NCBI GenBank assembly: GCA_051530055.1
Contig: CM121342.1
Coordinates: forward strand, 8,447,480-8,511,479
Length of the DNA: 64,000 nt
Direction: 5' to 3'
Origin: Neoechinorhynchus agilis
Taxonomy: Eukaryota > Animalia > Acanthocephala
The translations under genes were made by a program, and so were the position numbers. Shown here piece by piece: positions 4,466 to 56,787 of this stretch. The first letter of the stretch is position 1, and every line of letters starts with the position of its first letter. The notes beneath the pieces were generated by a model. It ran no database searches. It saw nothing but the letters and a program-made list of their open reading frames with translations, and was not told where the DNA came from.

Positions 4466-4489
4466 TTACTAACAAACAAACTGATGACA

Positions 4490-19599: not shown

Positions 19600-22500
19600 A
19601 GCTTTGTGGGTGGCCGTATGCCTCCCTCCACCGCAACACTAGGTGGTTGCGATAACATTCTGAACCCTTTTGCCCCTCCCTAAAAAAAGAGAATTTATTC
19701 AGCATATCGAGTATAATTCAAGTATAAGTCAGTGCGATGGACAATGAGTATAAATTAGGAATATGAGTAAGATGTCCAACGATTGCACCGTTGCAGGCAA
19801 AGATCCTTCAGGAACCCAGCCCAGGATTTTGGTAGCAAATCAATGTGCCTGAAGAACTCTTGAATGAAGAGTGGCTTGTGTTCGGGAGGGCGATCTCTTG
19901 AGAAAAACACTAGGCTGGAAATGGCCCACGACTTCCAGATAGTACGAACGTGATGAAAGTCAAGTCCCAATTTGTAAGCGCGAGTGGCTTTTGATTTAGC
20001 TATTTTGAGAAGTTTCTTCAATTTTGAAATGCCAGTCCTGGGGGATAAGTTGACCGTAAGAGTGTGACCGAGAATACGCAGTTTACTGGGCATAAAATTC
20101 TCGACAGGTGAGGATGAAGAATTATTGGAAAGGTGTGAGGAAAAGAAAAGTTTTAGATCTTTGCGTAAACAACTTGAACGGGTTTTGAAGATCAGTTTTG
20201 TTTTTGAAAAATTGAGAGAGAGGTTCATGCGAGGTAGCATGGTGTTAAGATAGTCTATAGACTGTATAATTAAAAGTTTTAAACTGGTGATCCTGTGAGA
20301 TTTCAGCACAAAGGTGAAATCATCAGCATAGCAGATCAAGTTAGCGTTATAAGAGAAGTTTTGTACAAGATATTGAGAGGCCAAGAGGAATAAGATAGTA
20401 GAGAGAGGTGATCCCTGTGGGACACCATTAAGAGGGTAATATAAGGTTTTTGTAGCGTCATCGTCAAAAAAGAAGGCCTTTGAGAACAGTGTATTGTGAA
20501 TCCTGGCAATAAGATTATGTGGAACACTGAAAAATTCTAACATCTCGATAATAAAGCCCAGCGAGATTTTGTCAAAAGCCTGAGACAGGTCCACTGCTAA
20601 AATAGCACGTAGAGGGAAGGCATCGTCCCCGAAATTCGAGTAAATGTCAGCCAGCGCTGAGTGAACAGATTTGCCTTTTAAAAAACCATGACAATTACTG
20701 GAGATGCAGTTGTGTTCCCTGATAAAAAGATTTAGTTTATGCGCTAGAGCACGTTCATAGATGGTGACCAGGGGATTTTGCAGGGAGATCGGCCGAAGGT
20801 CGTTGGGAGCCGTAACTAACTTCCTCCCATTCTTAACTAAAAATATGCGCCTCGAAATGTTGATATCTCTCCAGGCATAAGGGGAGCACTTCAACATCAG
20901 ATTCGCTATGAGGAGGACACTCTCCCGAGAAAGCAGGGATAGGCATTTTGTCCCTGAGGTGCTATTGGATGAGGACAATTTTGGATTAAGGGACCAAACT
21001 TTGACAATATCAGATTGATTTAAATCAGATCGATTAGGAATTAGCCTCCTAAAAATGACTAGAGTAATGCCTTTAGCACATGATGAGCCATGAAAGTCAA
21101 AGATAGACGAGAGAATATGATCCATAGAGGATGCTTTTAACCATGAGGTGAGTTTCGACCCCCAACTGATAAACCTCTTCTTCCCAGAGGCCATATTCCA
21201 CCAGGACGATGAGAATGTTTGTAAGGATTTTAGGGTAGCGCGGTCGGAAACCAATTGTTGTCGACATCGAGCAGCCCAGTAATGACTAAAGAGCACTTTG
21301 ACAAGAAGAGTATCTCCACGAATTTTGGCTTGATATAATTCACGCCCAATAAAACGGAAGGATCTTCTTTCATAAGGTCTAGAAAAAGTTCTTTGTGGTT
21401 GATAGAGGAACAGATTAGCGGTGGTATTGATAAAACTGTTAATTTGAGGTAGGGAATAATTTAGAGAATTAGTTAAAACCGAACAAGATAGAAGTGAATA
21501 GCTAATCGCTCTGAAAAAGCGATGTTCAGAGGAGACAAATGAAGGACTCTCCTGAGTGTATTATTGGAGCCGATAGACCATATTAAGATATCATGACCCG
21601 TTAGGTGGAAGCGAGAAAATTGACGATCTACTTGAACTAGCAGATTTAAGCATTTCCTGTGAATGATAAGATCCAGGAAGGAATGCGTGTTATTTTTAGT
21701 TAGAATATGAAAGGATGGGGTGAGAGGAGCGGAGTTCGTATTGAGGTTTAGCGGAGTTAACTATGGCTTTGGACCATTTCATTGAGGGATCGTTAAAATC
21801 ACCAACAATGAAGTCAATATTGGCACGAAGGCATTTAATGACATTCTTAACGGCCGGACGATGAATAAAACCGGGTCGTATGTACAGATTGACAATAGTG
21901 AAAGGCCGGCGAGTGAAATAAAATTTAAAGATAGAGTAGGATAGCTCATTTGTCGTGAAGGAAGATGATAAGGAGGGATTGAGAGAGGATTTGAAGACAG
22001 AAATAAGCCCTTGAGACGAATGATCGAATGGATCAGAGATAAAGGAATTGTATTCAGGAGAATCAAGCTGCGGTAGGAGATTAAAAAGTTGGGAGGTATT
22101 AAAAATACTCTTGCTTTCTTGTAAAAGTAAGATGGAAGCTCCCGATATGAGACTATTAATTTTCGGAAGATTGGGGTGCAGAGTTCATCACGCAAATGTC
22201 TCATACCCTCAACGGCTGCAATAGAAATTGGAAGTCCAGATTTTCTTGATTTGATGAAGTATTTAATTGTGCAGCCGAATGATGATTCGAAAAGATCCCT
22301 ATCCTCCTTGCATATATCCGGTTGGAGTCCATGAACAAGAAATTGAACCTTTTGCGAGGTTGCAGAGACCGTTTAGAGATTATTAGGAAGATTGGAATTG
22401 GCGAATTTAACCAGATTGGACATCCATTCATATTTGGAAACATAAATCCTCATGGTGCCGGCGAAATAAGATAGTTTATCAACTCGTTTTATGCCATCGT

Positions 22501-23711: not shown

Positions 23712-23935
23712 CTGGAGGTCTGAGGGACGTGCTGATAAAGAGAGGGTATCCGGGTAGCAAGATAGCTCGATGTATTCGGGACGCACGCTATGCTACCTTC
23801 AGGAAGCAAAACGAACCAAAAGAACGGGGTTTCGTTTGAAGTTCCATTCGTTAATGATCAATGGAACGCGATGCGAATCGAATCTTGAGGTCGGCAAGAT
23901 ACAACTCAGATCCCTTTTTTTGATTCTGAAATGTG
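23712..23935 (+). mobile_element. Penelope-like element fragment (post-RT C-terminal extension)
   Basis: Reads LRDVLIKRGYPGSKIARCIRDA, matching the L..RGYP...I motif of PLE RT C-terminal extensions. Confidence 0.45.
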
Positions 23936-24093
23936 TTGGCGTCCAAAGATGGAGAATGGGAAATCAGTGCAAAGCACCCTTCTAGATTTCTAGAAATTCT
24001 TAATCTCTAGCTGAATTTATCAGGATAAAGACACGAACTAATGGACAATCTCCAATTGACAAATGATCTCAAAATCCCTCAGTAGTTTCCCGC

Positions 24094-25235
24094 TGCCTTC
24101 TAAACCAAAAGGTGAATCTGTTAGTTTTGGTTGAAATTCCGCGTAGATGACGAAACAATGAATAAAATTACTTTTATTCATATAAAAAATCTCTATAAAG
24201 CTTCTTATACGAACGTTTGATTCAAATTTGACCCAGGAGAATTTTTGTTAAGTTTCAATAGACCATTGAATTTTTCACTTTTTGCGATATGCTGATAAAT
24301 TCATAATCGCCCTTCTAAATTTTACGCATTTTCATGAAGGAAACAAAACGAATTTTCGGGTAATTTTTGCGCCATATTTCTACTGTTTTGATATGGCAGA
24401 AAAATTGAAGCAATTTATATGGTTCGATATTTCTGCACAATCTTGTGCCTTTGTCAAGAGTTTTTCTTTAGAAAATTACAAGTAAGCTTACTAACAAACA
24501 AACTGATGACAAACCCGAACTGGAACGCTGGTGGAATGAGACAGCTGAAGTGATTCGTAGTGAAGCAAAAAAAACTAGGAATGACATCGAGGAAACCTAA
24601 ACCCCAAAACAAAGAGGCATGGAGGTGGAATCAAGTCGTCAAGGACGCAATCAATCTAAAGAAGTCAGTCAGGAAAAGATTGGATTTTGACGCTTCGGCC
24701 TCGAATGCAGACGCTTACAAACAGGCTAAAAGGAAGGCCGTATGAGAATGCGCCAAAGCCAAGAGGGAAGCCGATAACGGCCTGTTCTAAAAATTGCAGC
24801 GAGGGAGTTGTAGAGATATGGTCTTCAGGTTGGCCAAAGTCAGGGATAAAAAATCGCGGAATATCGTGCACCTCAAAATGATCAGTGATAGCCATGGCAA
24901 GACGCTGGACCAATGTAAGGACATTTTGGATAGGTGGAAGGAATATTTCAGCACTCTGTTGAACACTGAGAATGACAGACTGCTTCTAGAGGACTTACAC
25001 CCGAATGTCAATATGACGAGGCCGTACTCGTACGATGAGATGGCTGCACAGCTCAGGAAAATGAAGACTGGTAGGAGCGGCGGTCCAGAGAACATGCCGA
25101 TCGAACTGTGGCAGTCAATGGGAGTCTTGGGAATAAAGTTGCTCATGGGGCTCTTTCAGAAGATAGATTTGGAGGAAAAGATCCCGTCGGAATGGCAGAG
25201 AAGCATATTGATACTGATCTTCAAAGGCAAAGGAG
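24094..25235 (+). repeat. Near-identical direct duplicate of 4074-5213 (exon X + 5' part of the RTE)
   Basis: Matching ORFs 4260/24282, 4538/24560 and 4772/24794 differ by only a few substitutions. The offset is about 20.02 kb. Confidence 0.95.
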
Positions 25236-27240
25236 TTGGATTCGCAAGACGTTCTTTCAAAACTTCATATACGTTACACTGTCTACTGTACTGAATTTGT
25301 TCAACGTCAGATTAAACATCAATTGATGGTAATCCGGTAAAATATGCAAGTAAACGAAGAAATGTATTCGAAATAGAAGTAACATTCCCGATATAAAGTT
25401 TAGATATCATGTTACAAACTCCGCTTCATCCAACTGAGTAATCGCTGAAGTTAGCAGACATAGCAGCGGAAGCGTTTCTCATAGAGACAGATATTACTCA
25501 AGAACTTCGCGATCAAAACACACCTTCTCCTCAAAGCAACTGAATTTGCTGAACAAGGGACCCGACTATATTATTAAGAATAAGATTGATCGACTAAAAT
25601 CCGATGTGAAACAGAGCTGCTCATAAACTCACATCCAGATCTGGTGAGTTCAATTTTGGCCTATGACAGGAAAGCTCGTACTCGGAACGTTCGCAACGAT
25701 AATGATGAAATGGCAATCGCAAAGTCCGTGAAGGATGTGGCATCAATAATGATTTGCAAATCTGACAAAGGACGCGCTTTATTAGCTGTGGACATGGAAT
25801 GCTATCAAAAGAGGGCTATGGATCTTCTTAACTCTGACAAATTCGGGAGGCTGGCGAAAGATCCCACGCGAAGCAGAGAAACTAAATTTAACGGTTTCCT
25901 AAGGAACTTGTTGAACCGGTCGCTGATCAGTCTTCAATTTTACAACGGGACGCGTTCATCATCGGCTAAGTGTGCGTTTCTATATCTCCTTCCGAAGATT
26001 CACAAGCCAATCATGCAGTACCGTCCAATTATAGCCAGTTACATGTCATTCAACCATCGCCTATCCAAAAGGATCAATGTTTTATTAAGATCGATTGTAG
26101 CAACTTCCGCCTCGCACATCAAGGATGGACCCACGTTTGCAATTGAGATCAGGAAAATAAACGTTAAGCTCCACAGAATGTTTACGGCCGATGTTAATGC
26201 TCTTTTCACCAATGTCCCGTTGACCAAAACGATCGAACTATCGGCTGATTTACTATCGAAGAATTGCAGTGAACCATGTTTGGACCGTGGTACGTGGTAT
26301 TCCCTAATTCAATGGTGCACGAGTATGACTGCCTTTGAATTCGAGGGTTCTTTTTACAATCAAAAAGATGGTGTAGCCATGGGATCTCCACTAGCTCTGA
26401 CTTTGTGCGACATTTACATGCGGGATTGGGAGTTCACTTTTTTGGAGTCTCATAGTTATGTAAATCGACGGTGGCGTTATGTTGACGATGCATTCATTCT
26501 AACTGATCCAAACCACAACAAAGATTCACTAAATGTTGATCTGAATATTCAAGATTCACACAAACAGTGGACAGTCAACGAAGAGGGCATCGACGGTGAG
26601 GTCTCGTTCATCACAAGGCAAAGTTAGCACCTCACTTTTTCGTAAGGCGAACCTACCATGGGGACCACCACACTGGTCAAGCCACCAACCGATAAGGCAT
26701 AAAATCTCGGCGGTCTCTTCATACTTCCGAAGAGCCTCTCTTATCTCATCCACTCGATTGGCGTGGAGTAAAGAAAGGGAGAAGATAGTCCAGAAGCTAA
26801 AAATGATGGGATATCCCAAATGGATTATAGACCGCGGAATCAAAAGCAGGAAGTACCATCCACACAACAACCACAACCAAAAATCGCCCGCAGAGCTTAT
26901 ATGTTTTGAAAAAGTGAACTTCATTGATGATGAAACAAATCAGATGATCTACTCCATTATGAGTAAGAAGGCTGGAACTCGTCTCTATAACAATAAAGGA
27001 ATCGCCCTCAGATGCACATTCAAGAGGAAGAGTAAAACTGAGCCGATGCATGGGTTTTACAGAATGCACTGTGAACAGTGTGATAAAGTCTACATCGGAT
27101 AAACGATGCAGGGCATTAAGAAGAGGGTCTCGCAACATAAGCAAGCTTGCATTCGATTTGAGCATTCTTCGGCAATCTCAAATCATCAAGAGACATGTAA
27201 GCATCGAGCGGATTTTGGTGGCACCTATTTCGATGCACTA
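25236..27240 (+). mobile_element. Penelope-like element (RT + GIY-YIG), disrupted
   Basis: LNLLNKGPDY. ORF 25644-26627 has KSDKG, LYLLPKIHKP..YRPII, DVNALFTNVP, YNQKDGVAMGSPL and WRYVDDAF. ORF 26596-27102 has GYPKWII and GFYRMHCEQCDKVYIG*T. Confidence 0.92.
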
Positions 27241-34422: not shown

Positions 34423-36822
34423 ATGTCCCAAGAACGAAGAAATGATCAAAATAAAGAACAAGCGTCTTCAATTGCCGAACCTGATAGTAAGAAACAATCT
34501 ATTGATACAACAGTCGGACTAAACCTTCATTTGGGAACAACTGAGCCGCTTGATCAAGGGCGATCATCCCATGACTTAGCAGTCACTGGACACGTCGAAG
34601 TGGCACAATCTACATCACTGCATCTACATCAAGCACAACCAGAATCAGTTGTCCATTCTGTCCACCACAACGAAGAACGTCATCCGGAAACACCGCAGAG
34701 AAAACGTAGTCTTCAAGTGGAAGCTACGGCCGAGGAACAGCGAACTTATGGCACGTCTTCAACCGCCAAGCGTTTTCGGATACCTGCTGAAATGACTACA
34801 CGAGTGCAGCCGCAGCAAAAAGTATTGATTCAACCTGATATCCGCCAAAAAAACCGGGGGGGAAAATGACGACCAAAGTTATATAACAGGACATCAGGAA
34901 GCGGGAGAACGAAAACGATGCCATGCAGGAGAAAATTCGGAATCAAATATACCGACAATTAAGACATCACCAGCAAGCAAGAGATCACGAGGACTGCTAG
35001 AACAATTTGAAAGAGCGCAGCCTAGTGTTAGTCGGAGAACGTTGACACCGTTGCCGCAACCTCACGCTCAGAATCAACAAGTGTTTATGAATCCCTGAAT
35101 ACAATCCGCTGGTCAGGGTGGAAATTATGATTCGGCCCAAAATCTCCAGTTTCCATCCCAACAAACGTCTAGAGAAAATTATGGGCAAGCGCGGCGAATA
35201 ACAATGACTGCTGCAATGCAATCTGCTGGTCAATACGGAAATTATACTCCGGCGCCGAATCCACAAGGCCCATCCCAAAAAACGCCCCAAAAATACTATG
35301 GGCACGCGCAGCCAATGGCAATGAATGCTGCAATGCGATCTAGTGGTCAAGGAGGGTATTATATTCCGGCGCCAAATCAACAGGTCCCACCACAACAAAC
35401 GCTTCCAAGAGACCATGGGCAAGCGCAGCGAATGGCAATGACTGCTGCAATGCAATCTGCTGGTCAATGCAGAAACTATACTCCGGCGCCGAATCTACAG
35501 GGCCCACCCCACCAAACGCCTCAAGGATATTACGGGCAAGTGCAGCGAGTGCAAACGAATGCTGGAGTGCCGACCGCTGGTCCAGGCGGATATAATATTC
35601 CGGCATCGAATCCACGAGGCCCACCCCAACGAACGCCTCGAGGATATTATGGGCAAGTGCAGCGAGTGCAAATGAATGCTGGAGTGCCGACCGCTGGTCA
35701 AGGCGGATATAATATTCCGCTATCGAATCCACAGGGCCCACCCCAACAAACGCCTCAAGGATATTACGGGCGAGTGCAAATGAATGCTGGAGTGCCGACC
35801 GCTGGTCAAGGCGGATATAATATTCCGGTATCAAATCCACAGGACCCACCCCAACAAACGCCCCAAGGATGTTATGGGCAAGTACTGCGTATGCCCATGA
35901 ATTCCGGAGTACCGGCCACTGGTCAAGGCGGATATTATATTCCGGTACTGAATCCACAGGACCCACCCCAGCAGATTAATATCCAACGTTCCGGACAAGT
36001 GCAGGGAATGCCAATGAATGCGGGGGTGCCGACCGCTCGTCAACGCGGATATTTTTCTCGGGCGCCCAATCCACAAGGTCAGTCCCAACAGATGAATATC
36101 CAACGTTCCGGACAAGTGCAGCAAATGCCAACGATTGCTAGAATACCGACCGCAAGTGAAGGTGGATATCCGATGATCGGACAGCGTCGTCAAATTCCCC
36201 TTCAACAGATACCACCTCAACAGTTGATAAAGGATCAACGATTGTCAGTAGGAAATGTAATGCAGGCTACTGCCCAAATCCGCATTTTCCAAATCAACCG
36301 ATGAATTTTAAACAGTATAGACAAGTGCAGGGAATGCCATTTGATTGCCGGGCGCCTATAATTCCAAGAAATCTTCAATTGCAATTTCCGGCACATCAGC
36401 AGGCCCTAACCCAGCAATTGGTACAAATAAATCAGATGCCGATGAATTTTAGGGCACCGACTTATGATCAAGTTCCAATCGTGATGAGCGATTCGCGATC
36501 GCAAGTTTCCACCCAGCAGGATCCTCAAATACAAGAGTAACCTTCAAAAAATCAGCGGACAGAACAGGAATCTATCTCAAATATATCGCAGCACCAATGT
36601 GAGCAACCCGGAGCTGCTCAAGAAAGTCGCCAGAATAATGTTTCCCTTCGGCAACGGTTGGACAGGAAGCGATGCTTTCCTCAAGTTGAAGAATTTATGG
36701 AAGATCGTGGAATCGAGACTCAAACCACATCAAAGAGACCACGGATTCCGGTGGACAAAGCGACGGTCAAAAAAGGCGGCATGCCCGTACAGCCAATAAA
36801 TGAAGGAAACTTATGGGCATAG
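34423..36822 (+). pseudogene. Low-complexity Q/P/G/Y-rich protein gene with ten 39-aa repeats, disrupted
   Basis: ATG at 34423. Frameshift in an A/G run near 34860, TGA at 35096-35098, open frame 35204-36304, frameshift near 36250, TAA at 36538-36540, and a continuing frame to TAG at 36820-36822. 117-bp repeat starts at 35087, 35204, 35321, 35438, 35555, 35672, 35780, 35897, 36014 and 36131. Confidence 0.7.
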
Positions 36823-38249: not shown

Positions 38250-39480
38250 ATCAATTCGCATTTGGAGGATTGGGCAGTAAAGAGGAAAAAGCGGAGGTAG
38301 AGATTTGTGCGAGGAACTGAAGGATGAAATTTTTTGGGACGACGAGTGTTGTAAGTATGAGTAAAAGGAGAAATTTGCGGTAGAAATTGAGACGGAAGAG
38401 AATGAAGGCACTTTGAGTGTTTTTGAAAGATTAGATAGAGGTGTTTTTCTAAAGGCACGAGTTCGGTGGCGAAGATTAGAGCGCATCTCTTGTGAAAGTG
38501 TTATGTTTTATAAAAAGGTTGGATATGCGTAGATGAGCGTTGGTAGGATTGCGAAGTTATACAAGTACTTAAGGTCTTTGGATAATAATCCAAGAAATTG
38601 GAGGCGTTTGAGAAGATAGAGTTTATTGGACCCTCTGTTCAACGAAATTGATATGTGCTTGTCCTACTTTAGATTTTCTTGAAAATGAAGACCAAGTATA
38701 CGAACAGAGGAGACACGATTGATAGGAAACAAAAAGCAGCTGATCGGAAGGGCTATTTGAGATTGAGGGGACGATTTCGAAGCACTTAGTTAAGGATAAG
38801 ATATTTCGAGGAGTAAAATGTTTGAACGTGAGAAATCTTGTTAGAAGTAATTGAGAGTGAGGGGAGAGCCGGCGCCTGCATAAAGATTGTGAGATCATCC
38901 ACATACAAGAAGTATTTACAATACGAAAAGGATGGAATAATATCGTTCAGAAAAATGTTGAAAAGAATGGGGGAGAGAAAAGCCCCTTGTGGGATTCCTT
39001 AGTTGATTGCTAAGGTGTTAGAGGCGATGATCTCTATTTCGGTAAATTGTAATTTATTGTTTAGAAAGGATTTCGACCATTTTATTTGCCAAGCGGCAAG
39101 ACCAAATTTAGAGTAAGTATCAAGGAGAAGATTGTGATCGAAGGAATCAAAAGCTTTATGAATGTCGATTTGGATGAGTCGAGAAATAAATAAAGGGTGT
39201 GAGTCGAGGTTATGAAGAGAATCGTAGATGCAAAGAAGGGCGTCCGTACAAGAAAAGCCGGGCCGGAAACCGAATTGAATGGGTGGAATTTTTTGATTAA
39301 AGATTTGGGTCTTCAATGAAATGAGGGGTTCGCTGTAGTAGTTCATCGATCTTGGAGATATCGAAGAACAATGTGACTGTGAGGATTCGAATGTCGCGGC
39401 AGCATTTGATTTAAGGTTAGGCGGAGATTGAAGCAATGACTTCCAAGACACATTCCACCTTTGATTAACAGAAATGGATT
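38250..39480 (-). mobile_element. CR1/L2-like LINE, 3' half (RT and C-terminus)
   Basis: QFGFRPGFSCTDAL, IDIHKAFDS, WSKSFLNNKLQF, GIPQG..LSPILFNIFLND, and the C-terminal HTYNTRR motif. Confidence 0.88.
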
Positions 39481-39789
39481 TGATATATTGCTAAATAACG
39501 CGACGTTGGAGGCCTAAAGCTGATGCCTTGTCTAAAATCCACTTCTCATGGGCACGCTTTTATATCATATTTAATTGGTTCTATAATGTTAGATTTTTTA
39601 GGATAAAATATATTACAAAAATGATCAAGGCATCTTTATTGATATCCAGTTCAGTCTTCAGTCCAATAGTATAGAGATTTCTAGTGAATTTTAAAAAATC
39701 AACAATATTTTTCAAAGATAAAGGATTAATTAAAATAACATTTTTGGTATTCATTCATTCTATTTTTTCCACCTTGGCAGCTTAGTTTA

Positions 39790-40125
39790 CCCTCGCAGTA
39801 AGCAACATTCCTTACTCTCTCGAAATCGCTGGAGGTGCAGCCAGTGCAGCGGAAGGGAGGAAGGTACGAAAATATAGAGAATTAGCAAGGGCCCACTATG
39901 TTGTCCCCTTCGGAGTTCGGCACTCACTCTGCTCCAGGATTTCTCGAAGAAATTGAGAGAAACGACCGGCGACGAACTAGCGGGTGTATTCCTGGGACAA
40001 AATATCTCGCTTGCAGTACAACGAGGCAATGCTGCTGGCGTGATAGCGACAGCCGACGAAGCAGAGAAGCTAAGATTTTGCGGACGGTGGTGATTGCATA
40101 AGAACTAACAAAAAAACATTCTTTT
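39790..40125 (+). mobile_element. CRE-clade element 3' end, abutting the promoter of kinase copy 3
   Basis: Near-identical to 53045-53395, with an internal deletion (ACCCTCGCAGTAAGCAACATTCC ... TTTTGCGGACGGTGGTGATTG..AGAACTAAC). Confidence 0.85.
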
Positions 40126-40512
40126 TGGGAAAACATTTTTCGTCCTAATTCAATTTTTATCCGAAGTTCAAGCGATAACTGGGAGATTCCGACAATTCGC
40201 GATTACTTTCATTTACCTTATCGACCGAGCAGTTGAAGCATTGGATCGCGAATGGAAGGTGGGCCAATATAAGCATTCGTCTATTTACCTGGTCAATGAT
40301 TATGACACAAAACGTTGGCCAAAACACTGCTCAAGACTAGGACATCACATGGACTGGCATGAACTGCAATAATATTTTCAAAACAATGTCATCAATAAAC
40401 AAGTGGGTATAAAAGCTGCTGAGATCAATGTTTGAAGACTGTGTGAATTTAAGGATCCACTTGCGAGCTATTTGAATCGAGACTACAATTTTAAACTCAT
40501 CTCTCTTCGTTC

Positions 40513-41656
40513 ATGGTTCAAATTGCGATCGAGAATATCAAGCGAGCGGGAGTTCTCGGACACGATAATAAAGTTTATATCTTGGGAGATTTAATTTGTG
40601 AAAGCAGTTTCGGGGAAGTTCTCAAATGAAAACAGAGGGGACCAAAAAGCAACCTTGCAGTTAAAATATTAAAGAACGCCATTGGGGACTTCGACATGGA
40701 TGATTGCGAATTCACGATGTTTAATGCCATAAAAGAGGTTGATGGAGAACGAGCTAATATCGCAGTGTCCCTCGAAATGTTTAAGTAATGCAGTCATCCG
40801 TGCATGATTCTTGAACACTACGAAATGGTAAACACATTTGGACCAACGCCAAACAATCGGTTGTTTTCCTTGGTATAACCAAATGTTGCAAGCATTGGAG
40901 AAGCTAAAAGATCTTCATGGAGATCTCAAGCTAGGAAATATTATGATGGCCAATTGTCTAGGTAAACCTGAACAATTCAAACTCATTGATTTTGGTCTTG
41001 CCGTACAACTACGAAACCAAGAGTCTCTCTATGGATACCTCCAAACTTCGTACTATCGAGCTCCGGAAATGATCGTGGGTTTACCCATCGCTAAATCAAT
41101 CGACATGAAGAGCCTTGGTTGCACTATCGGGGAACTCGCGGTTGGGAGGCCAATGTTTCCAGGGAGTGATGATTATGAAACACTGGTTAGAATAACGATA
41201 ACAAGAGGTGTTATCCCGAATGCGGTCCTTGATAATGGAGTACGGACATTGCTATACTATAATAGGACAATCAACGGAGATGGATGGGTGCTGAAATCTC
41301 CATTGGAAAGGGGAATCTTTCCGCCGAACAACAGTGCGCTGCATCTACCGTTAGTGTCGTTGGCTCAAGAAGATCCGCAAAACACCAACAAGTTTTTGGC
41401 AATGCTGGGTCACCTGCTTGAACTTATCCCCGAGAGTCGAGGTGATCCCACGGTCGGCATCAAACAAAAATGGAGACGTCGCTCAAATTTCCGGATAACG
41501 AGCGGCGATCATTTTCGTATTTTCTACGAAGAAAAGAATCAGAATGATTTTGTGGAGGTGAGCATTAACGGAAAAGGTAAATATTCGGAAACGTTGTTAG
41601 CAACAAAATATTTGGTTTTTAGGGCGAAAACGTTCCTTATCCTACAAAAACGATAA
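40513..41656 (+). pseudogene. HIPK-like kinase copy 3
   Basis: ATG at 40513, in-frame TGA at 40627-40629 and TAA at 40786-40788, deletions, HGDLKLGN, DMKSLG, and the alternative C-terminus. Confidence 0.9.
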
Positions 41657-43169
41657 GGTGTTCATCCAAATATTTATTCCGAAACATCAACATTTTGTTT
41701 TTATCGAATACTTGAAACCATTCTTTTCAATCTAAACTTAGAAAAACATTGTATCAAAAATGAAGTTTGTTAACGATTTAAGAGACAATCTATTACCCAA
41801 TTCCCAAACAGTCGAAGTAAAAATTATTTCAATAATGTTTTTATTTCGCAGAAAAATTGAAGTAATTTATTTTCTTACACTGACTTTGATTAATGTGCCG
41901 AATTTTCGAAACTCCAGCTGCATTCAAAAAATTCGAGGCTGTCTTAAAAATTTGAGATATAATCAAAATTGTAAATTTCAAGAATACTTCGTTGCTGCGA
42001 ATTCGCCATTCAATACAACACATATTTTTTATTTCTAAGAACCAAACCTAACAAGGCGGAAAAATTGACGGCGCAAAAATTACCCGAAAATTCGTTTTGT
42101 TTCCTTCATGAAAATGCGTGAAATTTAGAAGGGCGATTATGAATTTATCAGCATATCGCAAAAAGTGAAAAATTCAATGGTCTATTGAAACTTAACAAAA
42201 ATTCTCCTGTGTCAAATTTGAATCAAACGCTCATATAAGAAGCTTTACAGAGATTTTTTATATGAATAAAAGTAATTTTATTCATTGTTTCGTCATCTAC
42301 GCGGAATTTCAACCAAAACTCACAGATTCACTTTTTGGTTTAGAAGGCAGCGGGAAACTACTGATGGATTTTGAGATCATTTGTCAATTGGAGATTATCC
42401 ATTAGTTCGTGTCTTTATCCTGATAAATTCAGCTAGAGATTAAGAATTTCTAGAAATCTAGACGGGTGCTTTGCACTGATTTCCCATTCTCCATCTTTGG
42501 ACGCCAACATAACAGGGAATGAAGACCTTAAGCCCCTGCGGCTGCCACTAAGATCTGATCGCATGTTACCGAGATCTTATTGGTTTGCCTTAGAAATCCA
42601 CACCGTCCATGGCAAAACTAGGATTTGAAATGATGATTAAGAATGACGATTGCAGCAGTCGGCGGAGTTCCAGTCTCCGTTGATTCTGGATCACCGTCGA
42701 GGATTTGTAATAAAGCAACAGACCTGTCCCCAATCGTAACCGCGAAGAATTCCTGAGGTCCAAACCATCACAGCTTTGCAAGGTATTATTAGCCTACTTC
42801 AGTGTTTCCTATTACGGAGAAGCGGGGTCTGATTTCTGATAATATGGTTCTCGTGGTCCACAATTTCACCTTCGCTCAATTTAATCGGCTATTTCTCCGA
42901 GCGGCGAACCTCGCGATTCGCCGCTCGACATAAAAAGAGTTACGGATTTTCATTTGTTAAATAAGGTCTAAAACCTATTAATCGGATCGTAATTTTTAAG
43001 TATTTCTTCGTGGAAGATGCCGTAGAGAACAAAGGCAAGATTATTGCCAGTTAAACGCATACGCGAGAGTGCGAAGGCACTACCTAAACGTGAAGCGAAA
43101 GTATATGGAGGGGTAAAGGTTGACACGTTAAGAAGCTGTGAAGCGAATGTTTAGCGAAATGATAAATCG

Positions 43170-44110
43170 AGAAAATTAGAAGTGACAGTGGCCAATCACA
43201 CCACGATATGTTCATTTGGATTGCCGTTTCCGGGAGCCTTCAAAATCAAAGTACCGTCTCAGGTTTATGCCAGGAGAATGGATTTGGAGAAAGAAGCTGG
43301 AAGCATTTGGGAGGATTTGGCAAATTTATCCGAGGGAGATACGGTTGCAATGAAGGATATTAAGGTGAAATTACGCTTATCGCGTGAAGCTAACCCGATA
43401 CGATGTCCAGCGAGACGAATACCCTATGTATTGCAAGACCTGGGTAAACGAGAGATTCAAAGATTGGTGGAACGGGAAATTTTGGAAAGCGTGAATATAA
43501 CAGAGAAGTCGAATGGTTGACCCCAATCGTCTTAGTAAGGAAGGATGCTAGGAACATTTAGCCAACATGCGAAAAGTGTTACAGAGATTGCAGGAAACTT
43601 GCGTCAACGTGTGGAGATTCTTGGGAAATGTTCTTGAAGATGGGGTTTGCAGAGCAGATGAGAAGGAAGTCAAAGATTTGGTTTATGCTAGCTCGCCGGT
43701 GGACAAGCAAGAACTAAAACATTTCTTGGAGCAGTGAGTTTTCATGAAAATTTATTCCACAGTTGCAATCCAAGTGTGCTGATCTCTACAAACTATTAAG
43801 AAAGGATCAAAGATGGATCCGGAACCAGAGCTTAAAGAGTTGTTTCAATGCAACATAGAAAGCGGTTGAAGCGATTTGTATTGATATGCGACGTAAGCGA
43901 GAAGGGAGTCCTGCGATGTTCGCACCCAGAAAATTAAGCATGGCCGAAAGTAATTATTCAACGATAGGAAAAGAGGCCTCGCAATTTTCTTTGGAGCCAA
44001 ACGATTCTATCAATACTTTTATGGCCGATTTTTTGAACTAGAGATTGATCACAAACCATCATCATACGTTTTAGTGGTTACAAATGCGATCTCAGCCGAG
44101 ATGTCCACTG
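43170..44110 (+). mobile_element. Ty3/Gypsy pol remnant (RT start to RNase H-like domain)
   Basis: PIRCPARRIPYVLQDLGKREIQRLVEREIL, KRFVLICDVSEKGV and KRFYQYFYGRFFELEIDHKP. Confidence 0.85.
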
Positions 44111-44339
44111 CCATTATACGATATGGTTAGACTTTGGGGCCAAGCGTGCAGGAATCTGGTTTTTTCCATTTTGAATCTAGAACCTCCTTATAAATAGAGA
44201 AGGTTTCTTCAAAAATTCAATTACTTCTGCAAGGACAATATTGGTAAAATAAGATTTAACTTTTTATTCTTTATTTAATAAAATTAATTTTATTCGGCAT
44301 TAAAAAAAGTTATTTCAAATGATAACGAAAAGTTTTAAA

Positions 44340-44915
44340 AACTCGGTACTTCAAATGCGATCGAAAATTTAAAAACTATAAAAACCAAGATTTAGGTGCG
44401 TATACAGCACAGAAATCGATTAAGCTTACAATTTTCAACGAATCCGACAGCGTGAACATCATATTCCTGTGATACTAAAGGAAATTCGCGATTGGATTCT
44501 ATTTGAATGCTTCGATAATTTTTACGCTAACGCTAGTATGTATTTTTGCCATAAATTTGGAAACCCTCCGCCATCTCCAAATTTGGACACGAGTTCTATT
44601 GTCCTTCGCAGGAGAGCGATGATTTGTATGAACATTCGCGTGCAAAACGACGATTTAGCTTAGACGAAAATAGATTGATCTTAACTCAGATTGTCCTCTG
44701 TTGCTCATAAGGATATTAAGGCTGAAAATATTTTGGTGGACGACAGCGACTATGTAAAAGTAACCAAGTTCGAATTCGCTAAATTCTTAAACGAGAAACC
44801 GATGAGTATTTGTCGAATAGCAGAATACGGGGCATAAGAAGTGGACGATATGGATAAAAAACAAGTGGCGATTGGTGAGCACTTGGCGTTTTGGCCTACG
44901 AGCTTCAGATGGAAT
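44340..44915 (+). pseudogene. Decayed PKA/AGC-like kinase
   Basis: DLYEHSRAKRRFSLDENRLILTQIVL, HKDIKAENILVDDSDYVKVTKFEFAK, ICRIAEYGA*E and DW*ALGVLAYEL parallel PKA-C subdomains V-IX (AQIVL, DLKPENLL, VTDFGFAK, CGTPEYLAPE, DWWALGVLIYEM). Confidence 0.75.
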
Positions 44916-45149
44916 GAAGATTCTGGTCAAAGCTCAATACGAGAGGTATAAAGTTCGTGAACGTTTCCCCGGCAATTTTTGACAAATAATATTAACTTTT
45001 GCCACATCAACTGCAAACAAATTTTCGCTGAATTTGCGATTTCTTCGACTAATATCAAGCAACACGAAAAAAGGAGAGCCATTTTTAACCTTTCCGTGCT
45101 TCGAAAATCGCTTTTAGTTGACAAATGTAGTCCAAGTGAGGATCTCATC

Positions 45150-45272
45150 ACAATACCCGCGGCGACTGGAGAGCCAAGATCGACTTCGTTCTTGGCGCAA
45201 AAAATAAGCATTGCGGTGCAGCGGGGCAATGCGACCAGCATTTTGGCCCGCGCCGATGAATGGGAGCGTTGA
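45150..45272 (+). mobile_element. CRE-clade 3' end fragment (different subfamily)
   Basis: ATGEPRSTSFLAQKISIAVQRGNATSIL. Confidence 0.7.
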
Positions 45273-46044
45273 TCATCTGAATTGGAAGTATAAAAGTTCA
45301 AAAGCATTTTGGAAACGGTATATTAACATAGGTATAGAAAACGACAAAAATTTAAATAACAAAGCTTTATCGAATCTCCCTGTCGGTCATTCTTACTAAT
45401 GTCTACGATATCAAATCTTTTGCGACCTCGTAGAGGATAATATGCTTACCAATCGATGGTGTTATTTCTAAAATTAGTAGGATCCTATTATTAGAATAAG
45501 AATATTTGACAGTATTACTCTGCTATTTGTAAAATGTTGTTTTGCTTAATGCTATTGGTAATAAAAAGGAAATTAACTAGTCTTTTATTGCGGGAAAGGG
45601 AGTGTCAATTTGTTTCATTTTATTTTAAAATAACAGGTAAACTCTTTTTTGTTGATCAGCAGACATCCCCTTACCAAAGAAAAAGAAAATTACTCCGGCG
45701 AATGATTTTAATCAATATCTCGAAGATAGATATTATGTTGGCGTCGAAAGATGGAGAATGGGAAATCTGTGCAAAGCACCCTTATAGATTTCTAGAAAAT
45801 CTTAGTCTCTAGCTGGATTTATTAGGATAAAGACACGAAGTAATGGATAATCTCAAATTGACATATGATCTCAAAATGCCTCAGTAGTTTCGCGCCGCCT
45901 TGTAAACCAAAAAAGTGAATCTGTAAGGTTTGGTTCGGATCAAGATTGGGCTCCTCTACGTGGGCCTTCAGAATTTTTTTAGTATTTGGGTAAACAATTC
46001 TGAAGAAATTCCACGTAGATGACGAAACATTGAATACAATTATT

Positions 46045-46394
46045 TTTGTTCATATAAAAAATCTCTGAAAGGCTTCTTATATCAACGTTTGATTCAAATT
46101 CGACGAAGGAATTTTTTGTTAAGTTTCAATAGACCATCGAATTTTTCACTTTTCGCCATATGCCAATAAATTCTAAACCGCTCTTCTAAATTTCACGCAT
46201 TTTGATGAAGGAAATAAAATGAATTTTTGGGTGACTTTTGTGCCTTATGGAAGCAAAGCCACAAAAACCACCATTGAGAAATATTTCTACTGTTTTGATA
46301 TGGCAGAAAAATTGAAGCAATTTATAAGATCCGATATTTCTGGACAATCTTATGCTTTTGTCATGGGTTTTCCTTTAGAAAATTACAAGTAAGC
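46045..46394 (+). pseudogene. Decayed unknown exon X, convergent with kinase copy 4
   Basis: SIDHRIFHFSPYANKF*TALLNFTHFDEGNKMNFWVTFVPYGSKATKTTIEKYFYCFDMAEKLKQFIRSDISGQSYAFVMGFPLENYK, followed by GTAAGC at 46389. Confidence 0.45.
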
Positions 46395-46824
46395 TTTTCC
46401 TCATCGAAAAACTTCTGAAATATCGGAACAAATAAGTTTCTTCAATTTTTCCGCCTTGTTAAGTTTTGCTCTTAGAAATAAAAGATATGTGTTGTGTAGA
46501 ATGGCGAATTCACAGAACGAAGTATTCTTGAAATTTACAATTTTGATTATTTCTCAAATTTTTAAGACATGCTCAATTTTTTTCGAATGCAGCTGAGTCA
46601 GTGTAAGAAAATAAATTACTTCAATTTTTCTGCGAAATAAAAACATTATTAAAATAATTTTTACTTCGACTGTTTTGGAATTGGGTAATAGATTGTCTCT
46701 TAAATCGTTAACAAACTTCATTTTTGATACAATGTTTTTCTGAGTTTAGATTGAAAAGAGTGGCTTCAAGTATTCGATAAAAACAAAATGTTGATGTTTC
46801 GGAATAAATATTTGGATGAACACA

Positions 46825-47968
46825 TTATCGTTTTTGTAGGATAAGGAATGTTTTTGCCCTAAACACCAAATATTTTGTTGCTAACAACGTTTCCGAATAT
46901 TTACCTTTTCCGTTAATGCTCACCTCCACAAAATCATACTGATTCTTTTCTTCGTAGAAAATACGAAAATGATCGCCGCTCGTTATCCGTAAACTTGAGC
47001 GACGTCTCCATTTTTGTTTGATGCCGACCGTGGGATCAACTCGACCCTCGGGGATAAGTTCAAGCAGGTGACCCAACATTGCCAAAAACTTGTTGGTGTT
47101 TTGCGGATCTTCTTGAGCCAAAGACACTAACGGTAGATGCAGCGCACTGTTGCTCGGCGGAAAGATTCCCCTTTCCAATGGAGATTTCAGCACCCATCCA
47201 TCTCCGTTGGTTGTCCTATTATAGTATAGCAATGTCCGTACTCCATTATCAAGGACCGCATTCGGGATAACACCTCTTGTTATCGTTATTCTAACCAGTG
47301 TTTCATAATCATCATTCCCTGGAAACATTGGCCTCCCAACCGCGAGTTCCCCGATAGTGCAACCAAGGCTCTTCATGTCGATTGATTTAGCGATGGGTAA
47401 ACTCACGATCATTTCCGGAGCTCGATAGTACGAAGTTTGGAGGTATCCATAAAGAGACTCTTGGTTTCGAAGTTGTACTTCAAGACCAAAATCAATGAGT
47501 TTGAATTGTTCAGGTTTACCTAGACAATTGACCATCATAATATTTCCTAGCTTGAGATCTCCATGAAGGTCTTTTAGCTTCTCTAATGCTTGCAACATTT
47601 GGTTATACCAAGGAAAACAACCGATTTTTTGGCGTTGGTCCAAATGTGTTTACCATTTCGTAGTGTTCAAGAATCATGCACGGATGACTGCATTACTTAA
47701 ACATTTCGAGGGACACTGCGATATTAGCTCGTTCTCCATCAACCTCTTTTATGGCATTAAACATCGTGAATTCGCAATCATACATGTCGAAGTCCCCAAT
47801 GGCGTTCTTCAATATTTTAACTGCAAGGTTGCTTTTTGATCCCCTCTGTTTGCATTTGAGGACTTCCCCGAAACTGTCCTCGCCAATTAAGTCTCCCAGG
47901 ATATAAACTTTATTATCGTGGCTAAGAACTCCCGCTCGCTTGATATTCTCGATCGCAATTTGAACCAT
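46825..47968 (-). pseudogene. HIPK-like kinase copy 4 (inverted partner of copy 3)
   Basis: ORFs 47693-47968 and 46825-47643. Shares the codon-92 TAA, the deletions, KLGN and DMKS with copy 3. Confidence 0.9.
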
Positions 47969-48384
47969 GAACGAAGAGAGATGAGTTTAAAATTGTAGTC
48001 TCGATTCAAATAGCTCGCAAGTGGATCCTTAAATTCACACAGTCTTCAAACATTGATCTCAGCAGCTTTTATACCCACTTGTTTATTGATGACATTGTTT
48101 TGAAAATATTATTGCAGTTCATGCCAGTCCATGTGATGTCCTAGTCTTGAGCAGTGTTTTGGCCAACGTTTTGTGTCATAATCATTGACCAGGTAAATAG
48201 ACGGATGCTTATATTGGCCCACCTTCCATTCGCGATCCAATGCTTCAACTGCTCGGTCGATAAGGTAAATGAAAGTAATCGCGAATTGTCTGAATCTCCC
48301 AATTATCGTTATAACTCTGGAAAAAAACTGAATTAGGACGAAAAATGTTTTCCCAAAAAGAATGTTTTTTTGTTAGTTCTTATA

Positions 48385-48565
48385 CAATCACCACCGTCCG
48401 CAAAATCTTAGCTTCTCTCCTTCCTCGGTTGTTGCTATCACGCTAGCAGCATTGCCTCGTTGTACTGCGAGCGAGATATTTTGTCCCAGGAATACACCCG
48501 CTAGTGCGTCGCCGATCGTTTCTCTCAATTTCTTAGAGAGATCCAGGAGCAGAGTGAGTGTCCGT
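48385..48565 (-). mobile_element. CRE-clade 3' end abutting the promoter of kinase copy 4
   Basis: KKLRETIGDALAGVFLGQNISLAVQRGNAASVI. Mirror image of 39940-40125. Confidence 0.85.
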
Positions 48566-49490: not shown

Positions 49491-50149
49491 CTTAAAGAAA
49501 GTGTGCGTGTTTCTCATCCGAAACAAAATAAAGTCGAACATAAGCCAAAATATCATAAAATTCATGCTTAGGATTTCTCCAATTTTACAAATAACGCCAC
49601 GCATTTGGATCTTTGGATTTCGCAACAAGTCTTTCATCAGAAACAAAATAAAGCCGAATCTAAGGCAAAAGATAATTTTATTCAACGTTTCGTCATTTAT
49701 GTTGAATTTCTTCAGAATGGTTTACACAAATACTAAAACAATTCTGAAGAAGTCCCACGTAGAGGAGCCCAATCTTGATCCGTACCAAACGTTAAGATTT
49801 ACCTTTTTTGTTTACAAAGCGGCGGGAAACTACTGAGGGATTTTGAGATCATTTGTCAATCGGGGATTATCCATTAGTTCGTGTCTTTATCCTGGTAAAT
49901 TCAGCTATATATTAATAATTTTTAGAAATTTAGAAGGGTGCTTTGCACATCTTCATTTTCTTTGGTAAGAGGATGCCTGCTGATCAACCAATACAGTTTT
50001 CCTGTTATTTTAAAATAAAGCGGAACAAATTGACAGTCCGTTTCCGGGAATGAAAGATTAGTTAATTTCTTTTTTATTACGAATTACTTTAAGCAAAACA
50101 ATATTTTACAAACAGCAGAGTAATACTGTCAAATGTTCTTATTCTAATA

Positions 50150-51141
50150 TAAACAATCGGTTTACTTATACTTATGAATTCATCCATCAGAGCGTTCGTT
50201 TGAGCCTCATAAAAGGTGGGCAAGATAATTAAATTGACTAAAATTTTATTTTGACTCTAGAAACACTTTTTTAAGTGAGGTGAAGAAATTGAGGTAAAAA
50301 TTCGATAAACTGATACGACAAACGGATCTTAGCAAATAAAATGCGAATGTAGATTAAGTAATGGTACTAATTTTACATCTATAAAAACCGGGCACGAGGA
50401 ATTTCTGAGATAAATAATAATTTCTTACAGTCAATCCGTCAATCAGGTGAAAAATAAATGTTATTACTATCGAAGGTTTGGAAGTTATTTGAACGCTTTC
50501 AAATTTGCATAATTTTGAAAAGTTAGGCTAAGTGCCCGCTGATTTTGAATAATCTTATGTCCGTTTAAATCGTAAATACTCCAAGCACACAAAGGAAAAT
50601 ATGGGCGCTTTTGTCGATATCCAATCCCTTCATCGGCGTGGATGATCTTCATCTTTAATAAACCATCAGTGAGATGATATCAATCAACTTGGAATGCGGA
50701 ATCGTCGTCTTTTTTGCCGCCTCTTATTAGAGAATTCGTCTAGGTATTCTTCTATGTAGTCCTGAACTGCCATTTTGTAGTCGCCGCTGATTCTGGGTAA
50801 CCGTTGATGACTTTTATTAGTGGCCATTTTGCCTAGAAATCGTAAGGGTTCTAAAGGGCCTGCCCAATGGTAAAACCGAAATATGATTATGGTCAATTCC
50901 TAGTTTCCTTAGATTATTTAATCCGACGAAAGCCTTCGAATGAAGAACACTTGCAACATTGAAAGAACGATCCAATCGTTTTAGGTTTATATAATTTTGG
51001 AAATTTCGCTGAAGAATTTAATGTGTACCGTTTGCATTGTTATTACTCGTCTTTGTTGGCTGTCGCAAATTCCAGGATTCGTCAGGGCAATAACAATCAA
51101 ATTCGGACTTGGAACCTCTGTTCCTTATGTTTCGACGATGC
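50150..51141 (+). repeat. Direct duplicate of 10820-11811
   Basis: By-eye alignment. ORFs 11667/50997 and 11693/51023 are nearly identical. Confidence 0.9.
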
Positions 51142-53619: not shown

Positions 53620-56600
53620 TGCGAGGAATATCAGCCAAACGTACTGAGATAACAAAAATTTCTAAATATCCAAAAGTGCAAAAAAGCTTGATTATTGTAT
53701 TTGAAAAATAATTCTACTGACCGTACATTTCCCAATTTTATGGACAAAAACGATTCCGAAAAAGTTTCGCAGGGTTACTTCTGAAAAAAAGTTACCGAAC
53801 AATTTTAGACAAACGTATTGAGATTGTGAGGAAATCTATCAACAACCAAAATTTCTTAATATCCAAAAGTGTAAAAAGCCTGATTATTGTACTTGAACAA
53901 TAATTCTACTGACCGTCCATTTCCTAATTTTACAGACAAAAACGATTCAGAAAAAGTTTCGCAGGGTTATTTCTGAAAAATTTTTACGAACAATGTTAGA
54001 CAAACTTACTGAGATTGTCAGCAAATCTATCAAAAACCAAAATTTATTAATATCCAAAAGTGCAAAAACCCTCATTATCGTACTTGAAAAATTATTCTAC
54101 TGACCGTACATTTCCCAATTTTATGGACAAAAACGATTCAGAAAAAGTTCGCAGGTTTATTTCTAAAAAAAGTTTCCTAACAATGCTAGACAAACGCAAT
54201 GAGATTGCGAGCAAATCTATCAAAAACCGAAATTTCTTAATATCCAAAAGTGCAAAAAGCGTCATGATTGTATTTGAAAAATAATTCTACTGACCGTACA
54301 TTTCCTGATTTTATGGACGAAAACCACTCAGAAAAAAGTTCGCGAGGTTATTTCTGAAAAAAAGGTTCGGAACAATTTTAGGCAAACGTACTGAGATTGC
54401 GAGCAAATCTATCAAAAACCAACATTTCTTAATATCCAAAAGTGTAAAAAGCCTCATTATTGTATTTGAAAAATAATTCTACTGAAAGTCAGTCTCTCAA
54501 TTTTATGAACAAAAACGACTCAGAAAAGGTTTCGCAGGATTATTTCTGAAAAAAAGTTTCCGAACAATGCTAGACAGAGGTACTGAGATTGCGAGCAAAT
54601 CTATCAAAAACCAAAATTTCTTAATATCCAAAAGTGCAAAAAGCCTGATTTTTGTACTTGAAAAATAATTCTACTGATCGTCCATCTCCCAATTTTACGA
54701 ACAAAAACCACTCAGAAAAGGTTTCGCCGGTTAATTTCTAAAAAACGTTTCCGAACAATGCTAGACAGAGGTACTGAGATTGCGAGCAAATCTATCAAAA
54801 ACCGAAATTTCTTAATATCCAAAAGTGCAAAAAGCCTCATTGTTGTATTTGAAAAATAATTCTACCGACCGTACATTTCCGAATTTTATGGACAAAAGCG
54901 AATTAGAAATAGTTTCGCAGGTTTATTTCTAAAAAAATTTCCGAACAATGTTAGACAAACGCAATGAGATTGCGAGCAAATCTATCAAAAACGGCCTGTT
55001 GTATTTGAAAATAATTCTACCGACCGTACATTTCCGAATTTATACAAAAGCGAATTAGAAATAGTTTCAGGTTTATTTCAAAAAAATTTCCGAACAATGT
55101 TAGACAAACGCAATGAGATTGCGAGCAAATCTATCAAAAACGAAATTTCTTAATATCCAAAAGTGCAAAAAGCGTCATGATTGTATTTGAAAAATAATTC
55201 TGCTGACCGCACATTTCTCGCTTTTATGGACAAAAACCATACAGAAGTTTCGCAAGGTTATTTCTGAAAAAAAGGTTCCGAACAATTTTAGGCAAACGTA
55301 CTGAGATTGCGAGCAAATCTATCAAAAACCAAAATTTCTTAATATCCAAAAGTGCAAAAAGCCTGATTTTTGTACTTGAAAAATAATTCTACTGACCGTC
55401 CATCACCCAATTTTATGAACAAAAACCACTCAGAAAAGGTTTCGCCGGTTAATTTCTAAAAAAAGTTTCCGAACAATGCTAGACAAACGAAATGAGATTG
55501 CTAGGAAATCTATCAAAAACCAAAATTTCTTAATATCCAAAAGTGCAAAAAGCGTCATTGCTGTATTTGAAAAATAATTCTACCGACCGTACATTTCCGA
55601 ATTTTATGGACAAAAACGATACAGAAAAAGTTTCGCAGGGTTATTTCTGAAAAAAGTTTACGAACAATGTTAGACAAACGTACTGAGATTGTCAGCAAAT
55701 CTATCAAAACCCAAAAATTTTCTACATCCAAAAGTGATAAAAACCCTCAATATTGTATTTGAAAAATAATTCTACTGACCGCACATTTCCTGATTTTATG
55801 GACGAAAACGATTCCGAAGAAGGTTCGCAGGGTTATTTCTGAAAAAGTTACCGAACAATTTTAGACAAACGTACTGAGATTGTAAGCAAATCTATCAAAA
55901 ACCGAAATTTCTTTATATCCCAAAGTGCAAAAAGCCTGATTATTGTTCTTGAAAAATAATTCTACCGACCGTACATTTCCCAGTTTTATGGACAAAAACG
56001 ATACAGAAAAAGTTTCGCAGGGTTATTTCTGAAAAAAGTTTACGAACAATGTTAGACAAACGTACTGAGATTGTCAGCAAATCTATCAAAAACCAAAATT
56101 TTTTTATATTCAAAAGTGCAAAAACCCTCAATATTGTATTTGAAAAATAATTCTACTTACCGCACATTTCCTGATTTTATGGACGAAAACGATTCCGAAA
56201 AAGGTTCGCAGGGTTATTTCTGAAAAAGTTACCGAACAATTTTAGACAAACGTACTGAGATTGTAAGCAAATCTATCAAAACCGAAATTTCTTTATATCC
56301 AAAAGTGCAAAATGCCTCATTGTTGTATATGAAAAATAATTCTACCGACCGTACATTTCCGAATTTTATGCACAAAAACGAATTAGAAATAGTTTTGCAG
56401 GTTTATTTTTAAAATAAAGTTTCCGAACAATGTTAGACAAACGTACTGAGATTGCGAGCAAATCTATCAAAAACCAAAATTTCTTAATATCCAAGAGTGC
56501 AAAAAGCGTTATGATTGTATTTGAAAAATAATTCTACTGACCGCACATTTCCTGATTTTATGGACGAAAACGATTCCGAAAAAGGTTCGCAGGGTTATTT

Positions 56601-56787
56601 CTGAAAAAAGGTTCCGAACAATTTTAGACAAACGTACTGAGATTGTGAGCAAATCTATCAACAATCAGAATTTCTTAATATCAAAAAGTGCAAAAAGCGT
56701 CATTATTGTATTTGAAAAATAATTCTACTGACCGCACACTTTCCAATTTTATGGACAAAAACGATTTAGAAAAAGTTTCGAAGGGTG
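53620..56787. repeat. Satellite 1, about 191-bp monomer, about 16.5 copies
   Basis: AATAATTCTAC unit starts at 53707, 53899, 54090, 54280, 54472, 54664, 54855, 55010, 55193, 55382, 55573, 55765, 55955, 56146, 56335, 56527 and 56718. A degenerate partial unit reappears at about 59598-59690. Confidence 0.97.

Follow-up and report, generated by a model that had tools for sequence, protein, structure and literature searches.

Several described systems join inverted duplication to gene silencing or to exchange between copies. In mouse oocytes, endogenous small interfering RNAs (endo-siRNAs) are said to arise from inverted pseudogene duplications, as Tam et al. 2008 and Watanabe et al. 2008 reportedly described, and the ampliconic palindromes of sex chromosomes are large and near-identical structures kept so by arm-to-arm gene conversion. 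Pseudogene-derived endo-siRNAs are also treated in related literature (PMC2708354, PMC6944382), and in Drosophila hairpin RNAs (hpRNAs) are defined by Dicer-dependent small RNAs together with one primary transcript whose level goes up in dcr-2 mutants (PMC10317233). A locus with features of all these systems is described here from the acanthocephalan Neoechinorhynchus agilis, in a stretch of 64,000 nt (assembly GCA_051530055.1, contig CM121342.1, positions 8,447,480 to 8,511,479 of the forward strand; hereafter the window, numbered from its first letter). Two disabled copies of a HIPK/DYRK-like kinase, c3 on the left and c4 on the right, form the arms of an inverted repeat, and the same window contains an intact copy, c1, and a frameshifted one, c2. 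The repeat is probably an inverted segmental duplication of a kinase copy within a decaying, locally amplified cluster, a neutral by-product without a selected function of its own.

As in the Drosophila hpRNA loci (Nmy/Tmy versus Dox, and hp-tHMG; PMC10292708, PMC10317233), the arms of this repeat come from a young amplified gene family and neighbour an intact paralog, with stretches of perfect complementarity to the putative target. Like the mouse oocyte pseudogene pairs, c3 and c4 are inverted duplicates that could fold into long double-stranded RNA (dsRNA) directed against the founding gene. Both described classes are defined by small RNAs, namely Dicer-2-dependent siRNAs in Drosophila and sequenced small RNAs with target derepression in Dicer/Ago2 mutants in the mouse oocyte. 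The locus differs from the Drosophila ones in that each arm bears its own sense promoter and the arms lie 3.2-4.7 kb apart, and the kinase family, unlike Dox, is without known drive activity.

The inverted repeat is far beyond chance. Its core arms (39921-41885 and 46596-48560) align over 1965 nt without a gap at 96.7% identity, with 65 mismatches (41 transitions and 24 transversions), 0 indels and 4710 nt between them. With small indels allowed, the high-identity arms extend to 42068 and 46442 (blastn, 2149 nt, 95.0%, three gap openings), so that the left arm occupies 39921-42068 on the plus strand and the right arm 46442-48560 on the minus strand, each consisting of a kinase pseudogene with its upstream region. 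A symmetry of 87-91% runs further in, to 42512/45733, through an inner extension made of the tail of the duplicated unit (42070-42512, plus strand, paired with 45733-46244, minus strand, the latter being part of 45342-46441), and 3220 nt are left between. These limits agree with an earlier note on this DNA, which had claimed a mirror of 39940-42065 and 46440-48560 with few substitutions and a weaker symmetry inward to about 42520/45740 around a spacer of about 3.2 kb. The arms converge tail to tail, c4 being the sole minus-strand kinase copy within the window. The lack of indels in the core was considered as a sign of constraint and is unremarkable, because other duplicates in the window show one gap per 6-26 mismatches, against 0 gaps in 65 mismatches here.

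Both arms start inside the same repeat fragment. On the left it lies at 39789-40133 (plus strand, found again at 53045-53413/53417), the arm starting inside it at 39921, and its kin on the right outer edge lies at 48346-48560 (minus strand). The junction of this fragment to the kinase unit is identical in the two arms (40133|40134 and 48347|48346) and is a shared derived character of c3 and c4. The arms also have four lesions in common, namely a stop codon arising by TAC>TAA, a 15-nt deletion, the gain of one nucleotide and a 9-nt deletion that takes out three residues directly ahead of the HxD motif. The cluster lies at 40786-40914 on the plus strand in the left arm (TAA at 40786-40788, 15-nt deletion at 40827|40828, additional nucleotide near 40877, 9-nt deletion at 40913|40914) and at 47567-47695 on the minus strand in the right arm, with the stop at 47695-47693. 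All four fit into 129 nt, as if carried by a single tract. The left arm has in addition a private stop at 40627-40629 (plus strand, TGC>TGA), where c1, c2 and c4 read TGC. Relative to the intact c1, c3 and c4 are pseudogenes, that is, disabled duplicates. From the common junction and the four lesions it follows that both arms go back to the same template, already bearing the lesions, or that one tract of conversion made them alike.

All four copies in the window carry TATAAAAG 105 nt upstream of the ATG, in c1 at 8557, in the left arm at 40408-40415 (plus strand, with the ATG retained at 40513-40515) and in the right arm at 48066-48073 (minus strand, with the ATG retained at 47968-47966). The arms have thus kept the inward-facing TATA promoters that the earlier note had ascribed to them, just as its two kinase pseudogenes with shared lesions are recovered. 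Its further claim of closeness to the intact copy over most of the kinase domain holds at 86-96% identity per 150-nt window, only up to about 9535 in c1; past that point the 3' ends have nothing in common. Shared by c2, c3 and c4 are a 36-nt deletion and a 3' end that bears no relation to that of c1, and c1 alone has an AATAAA soon after its stop codon, 63 nt downstream.

The intact copy (8557-9794, plus strand; TATA at 8557, AATAAA at 9789) contains an uninterrupted and intronless open reading frame (ORF) of 354 codons at 8662-9726, encoding a HIPK/DYRK-like protein that consists of the kinase domain only. Among solved structures its best matches are HIPK2/3 (E about 1e-52; HIPK2, E 6.6e-52), followed by DYRK1A/B (about 1e-43), and the alignment to HIPK2 (residues 20-273) spans the Gly-rich loop, the VAIK-type Lys, HxD, DFG and the YxxxYYRAPE context. 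A PF00069 match is precomputed for its product. The ORFs of the arms still reach 72.7 and 69.1 bits against Pkinase (cut-off 31.7), but the entire catalytic core lies in a single reading frame in c1 only, the N-lobe of c3 and c4 being severed by the stop and the frameshift. The deposited c1 model (238 aa) begins at Met116, though the ORF open from 8662 encodes the full N-lobe, and several paralog models on the other scaffold likewise begin within the N-lobe. No poly(A) remnant, looked for as a sign of a retrogene, follows the AATAAA of c1.

Compared with the HIPK/DYRK kinases of the CMGC group, c1 has the aligned Gly-rich loop, Lys, HxD, DFG and APE motifs, the likeness coming from matches to solved structures; unlike the known members, it has 354 aa, comprises the kinase domain alone, is intronless and multi-copy, and shows only 33-40% identity to anything outside N. 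agilis. In the protein search its closest relatives were N. agilis proteins, and deposited family members number at least 12, grouped in several clusters that are spread over two large scaffolds and one small contig. Since nothing outside N. agilis exceeds 33-40% identity, the family is, by these matches, a lineage-specific, intronless and kinase-domain-only one in N. agilis. Among the nearest proteins beyond N. agilis are many from lineage-specific HIPK-like expansions in teleost fishes, to which the hosts of the parasite belong; their identity to c1 is far too low to suggest a recent transfer.

The identity between the copies is a patchwork. Over the outer 2 kb c3 and c4 are 96-100% identical. 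The tail of c4 is 99-100% identical to that of c2, 28 kb off and in opposite orientation (98-100% for the stretch 45342-46441 as a whole, against 15635-16889), the tail of c3 is 97-98% identical to remnants at 4071-4351 and 23934-24373 (both minus strand), and the two tails are only 84-91% identical mutually. As the tails match different copies, the weaker inward symmetry reflects two sub-lineages of the unit tail. The second copy, c2 (13828-16941, plus strand), stands in tandem to c1 at a unit spacing of about 5540 nt and is frameshifted by private indels; its 5' half is like c1 (97-99%), and its 3' half and tail are like c3 and c4 (95-100%). Against c1 the c2 stretch 13828-15450 is rich in indels, with 20 gap openings in 127 mismatches where other pairs have one per 22-26, which could come from genuine decay or from long-read indel errors left over in a repeat.

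Within the core, the mismatches form clusters at 39936-40190 and 40557-40699 (P=0.006), and a perfect arm-to-arm tract of 279 nt covers the promoter, the 5' untranslated region and the ATG (P=0.0025). When the changes are polarised by c1 and c2, 33 are derived in c4 and 12 in c3. ACOME3_006519, a paralog at another site of the scaffold, has 97.5% identity to c4 and 93.6% to c3, and so stands nearer to c4 than c3 does; many c4 states recur in it, and it lacks at least the 9-nt deletion. The differences between the arms are also rich in synonymous changes in the kinase frame (40513-41653 versus 47968-46828), 14 of 27 against 7.8 expected (P=0.007), giving a nonsynonymous-to-synonymous ratio (dN/dS) of 0.29, and the severed N-lobe is included in the low ratio, with a dN/dS of 0.20 between the arms. 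The excess is what patches brought in from constrained paralogs would leave behind, and is not predicted by neutral decay in place. Taken together, the mosaic identity and the synonymous excess point to copy-to-copy exchange among paralogs, and the clustered lesions could have spread through the same import of patches.

The signs of conversion, among them the 279-nt perfect stretch, and the presence of amplified-family members on the arms recall the ampliconic palindromes. Unlike these, the arms are only 2 kb long, carry dead genes and exchange with non-partners (c2, ACOME3_006519) at least as much as mutually. Typical palindromes maintained by conversion exceed 99.9% identity, whereas the arms reach only 96.7% and other pairs in the window 98-99.4%.

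Sudden switches to 99-100% identity between distant copies are also what cross-polishing of repeats could give. The 46-Mb N. agilis genome is a MaSuRCA hybrid assembly with purge_dups, Hi-C scaffolding and limited HiFi data, annotated by BRAKER under guidance of RNA-seq (PMC12690905), so it was considered whether the inversion, or part of the mosaic, stems from mis-assembly or repeat cross-polishing in this hybrid of Oxford Nanopore, HiFi and Illumina reads. Such an origin is highly improbable: 65 sites and several inner indels set the arms apart, the outer flanks on the two sides are, like the spacer, non-homologous, and N runs are absent throughout the window. Allelic false duplication and a fold-back read chimera are ruled out by the non-homologous flanks and spacer and by the 65 arm differences.

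Both arms have already been deposited as convergent gene models, which were compared here exon by exon, the broken frames being searched as separate ORF pieces. ACOME3_006614 (KAL7671710.1; 40883-43517, plus strand) has an exon at 40883-41557 (225 of 225 residues matched), a GT..AG intron at about 41558-43153 and an exon at 43155-43517 in the spacer (121 of 121), and so joins the C-lobe of c3 to a retroelement-like spacer ORF. ACOME3_006615 (KAL7671711.1; 46749-47598, minus strand) has an exon at 47598-46900 (232 of 233 residues), an intron of about 40 nt and an exon at 46859-46749 (37 of 37). Both begin at an internal Met past the lesions and are without the ATP-binding lobe.

If these models were working genes as annotated, their product would be an N-terminally truncated kinase fragment of about 268-346 aa with the C-lobe only, acting as a catalytically dead decoy or scaffold. 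The same 272-codon ORF is found in both arms, the C-lobe has a dN/dS of 0.37-0.40 between them, and models have been deposited not only for the arms but also for similar copies at other sites. The stop and frameshift common to the arms, however, lie downstream of the Gly loop and the catalytic Lys, the 9-nt deletion costs three residues just before HxD, and chance alone would keep a frame open through 22 substitutions with P of about 0.41. The severed N-lobe has an equally low ratio (0.20), and selection on a C-lobe product therefore cannot explain it. A working truncated gene is very unlikely on this balance.

The preferred account of a neutral inverted duplication is itself not free of difficulties. 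Neutral change since disablement would give a dN/dS of about 1, against the 0.29 found between the arms; the synonymous excess, taken here as a mark of imported patches, could also be read as selection on a truncated product. Both arms keep an identical promoter region and the 272-codon open frame and are called genes in an RNA-seq-guided annotation (PMC12690905), which together make some transcription of the arms likely. Part of the patchwork of near-perfect tracts could result from short-read polishing of the hybrid assembly (PMC12690905), and neutrality is not a property that can be demonstrated from a sequence by itself.

Transcription of the arms bears directly on the silencing role for which the earlier note had put the repeat forward, as the suppressor in a module of driver and suppressor. 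That role depends on transcription through both arms and on small RNAs: one transcript would fold into about 2 kb of dsRNA, and Dicer-made siRNAs would silence c1 and its paralogs. At 96.7% complementarity, 28 perfect stretches of at least 21 bp cover 1667 of the 1965 arm positions. Exact 21-mers of c1 (8560-9800) recur in the arms, 242 of 1221 in the left and 142 of 1221 in the right, with longest exact matches of 87 and 52 nt, respectively. AATAAA and ATTAAA are absent downstream of the pseudo-ORF in both arms, in contrast to c1 with its signal just past the stop, and the deposited c3 model is spliced on into the spacer, up to 43517. N. agilis lacks an RNA-dependent RNA polymerase (PMC12256650), and hairpins or convergent transcripts would therefore be its route to dsRNA; a precedent for a locus mixing intact paralogs and hairpins exists in the hp-tHMG cluster (PMC10317233). 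The sequence prerequisites for a hairpin RNA are thus present, and a silencing role is possible.

Several features speak against such a hairpin. The promoter of each arm yields sense RNA, and antisense RNA requires a read-through of more than 5 kb, across the 3.2-4.7 kb between the arms, in whose path stand plus-strand AATAAA hexamers at 42265, 42709, 44277 and 45560, with more beyond, and an equivalent series on the minus strand. The transitions compatible with G:U pairing show no strand bias (23 versus 18), the arms are no more alike than other duplicates in the window, and c1 lies 31 kb away, with no sign of selfishness or driver status. The repeat is not special in its setting either, being just one of the numerous duplications, direct as well as inverted, that this decaying repeat cluster contains. 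The hairpin is accordingly unlikely, and it is just as doubtful that ACOME3_006614 and ACOME3_006615 form a working hairpin or dual-strand small-RNA source restraining the recently amplified HIPK-like kinase family.

The stretch between the arms is an asymmetric spacer (42513-45732) composed of retroelement pieces, a duplicate and an insertion. Its part 42601-43578 is a 99.4% copy of 3098-4075 (minus strand), within which the retroelement-like ORF lies at 43155-43517. A weak RNase H remnant at 43886-44041 (E 0.008, below cut-off) was the only Pfam match among the spacer ORF pieces, and a diverged fragment of the arm-edge element lies near 44927-45307. The 56-nt piece 43701-43756 matches 16886-16941 (minus strand) and continues the tail of c2, relative to which 43757-45341 is a 1.6-kb insertion. 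In mid-spacer, at 44268-44299, AATAAA and ATTAAA hexamers are tightly clustered on both strands; transcripts arriving from either side could plausibly end there.

The surroundings are equally rich in duplicated material. The window has at least seven remnants of the kinase unit in both orientations, namely the four kinase copies and three tails without a kinase. The latter are located at 3098-4467 (minus strand, 97-99% to 42070-43578), at 23934-24489 (minus strand, 98% to 42070-42509) and at 49668-51141 (plus strand, 86-88% to the tail of c4 and 95% to 10818-11811 of c1). Young duplications link 3098-4075 with 43578-42601 (99.4%, inverted), 4071-5216 with 24091-25238 (98.5%, direct) and 10818-11811 with 50148-51141 (95%, direct). 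Reverse-transcriptase ORFs stand at 19755-21296 (minus strand, RVT_1 E 1.2e-26), 25644-26627 (plus strand, E 3.4e-07) and 38999-39451 (minus strand, E 1.1e-09), and stem from at least two kinds of retroelement. A satellite with a period of 191-192 bp occupies 53651-56786, and a different one with a period of 182 bp starts at 61521 and runs past the window end at 64000. An Rfam scan of the window returned two tRNAs only, tRNA-Gly(GCC) at 97-164 (plus strand) and tRNA-Asp(GTC) at 2562-2633 (minus strand), and none within the arms. A 117-nt tandem repeat at 35098-36169 falls inside a P/Q/G-rich ORF of 366 codons (35204-36304) without a Pfam match, which may be a gene for a repetitive protein.

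In Drosophila, PIWI-interacting RNAs (piRNAs) of Su(Ste) target Stellate, and by comparison this repeat-rich stretch might be a piRNA cluster in which the kinase pseudogenes are passengers whose piRNAs may incidentally target the kinase family. Retroelement fragments and unit remnants in both orientations, with satellites adjacent, suit such a cluster, and N. agilis has microRNAs, PIWI, ping-pong piRNAs and clustered piRNA loci (PMC12256650). Against it, the window also contains apparently ordinary genes (the two tRNAs and the intact kinase), and the density of transposable elements alone does not define a cluster. A piRNA cluster is thus rather unlikely. Public RNA data of N. agilis comprise two small-RNA libraries (PRJNA1127840, cited in PMC12256650) and 74 poly(A) RNA-seq libraries (PRJNA1223661).

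The inverted segmental duplication, preferred here, would have proceeded in a few steps. A repeat fragment would have ended up upstream of a copy of the c3/c4 type, which was presumably disabled and would then have been duplicated in reverse orientation, with the outer breakpoint within the repeat fragment (39921/48560). Ectopic recombination or gene conversion would have swapped patches between the arms, and between these and further members of the family, and retroelement pieces would have filled the spacer. The present consequences are mainly structural, as recombination between the arms could invert the spacer and continue the exchange, and at most incidental dsRNA would be formed if a transcript reads through both arms.

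For annotation it is of practical value that two genes deposited as 'hypothetical protein' are what is left of a dead kinase copy, with the N-terminus cut away, and that one of the models is fused to a retroelement ORF. If the repeat did restrain the kinase family, no endogenous hairpin-RNA regulator would have been described in Syndermata before it, and it would hint at an intragenomic conflict in which this family takes part; likewise, if siRNAs or piRNAs from the arms acted against the kinases, regulation by pseudogene hairpins would be known from a neglected parasite phylum too, and the family would become a candidate conflict locus. For now, the locus counts as an ordinary outcome of turnover in a gene family, and it shows cleanly and on a small scale how paralogs exchange patches, with the likely spread of a lesion-bearing tract among them.

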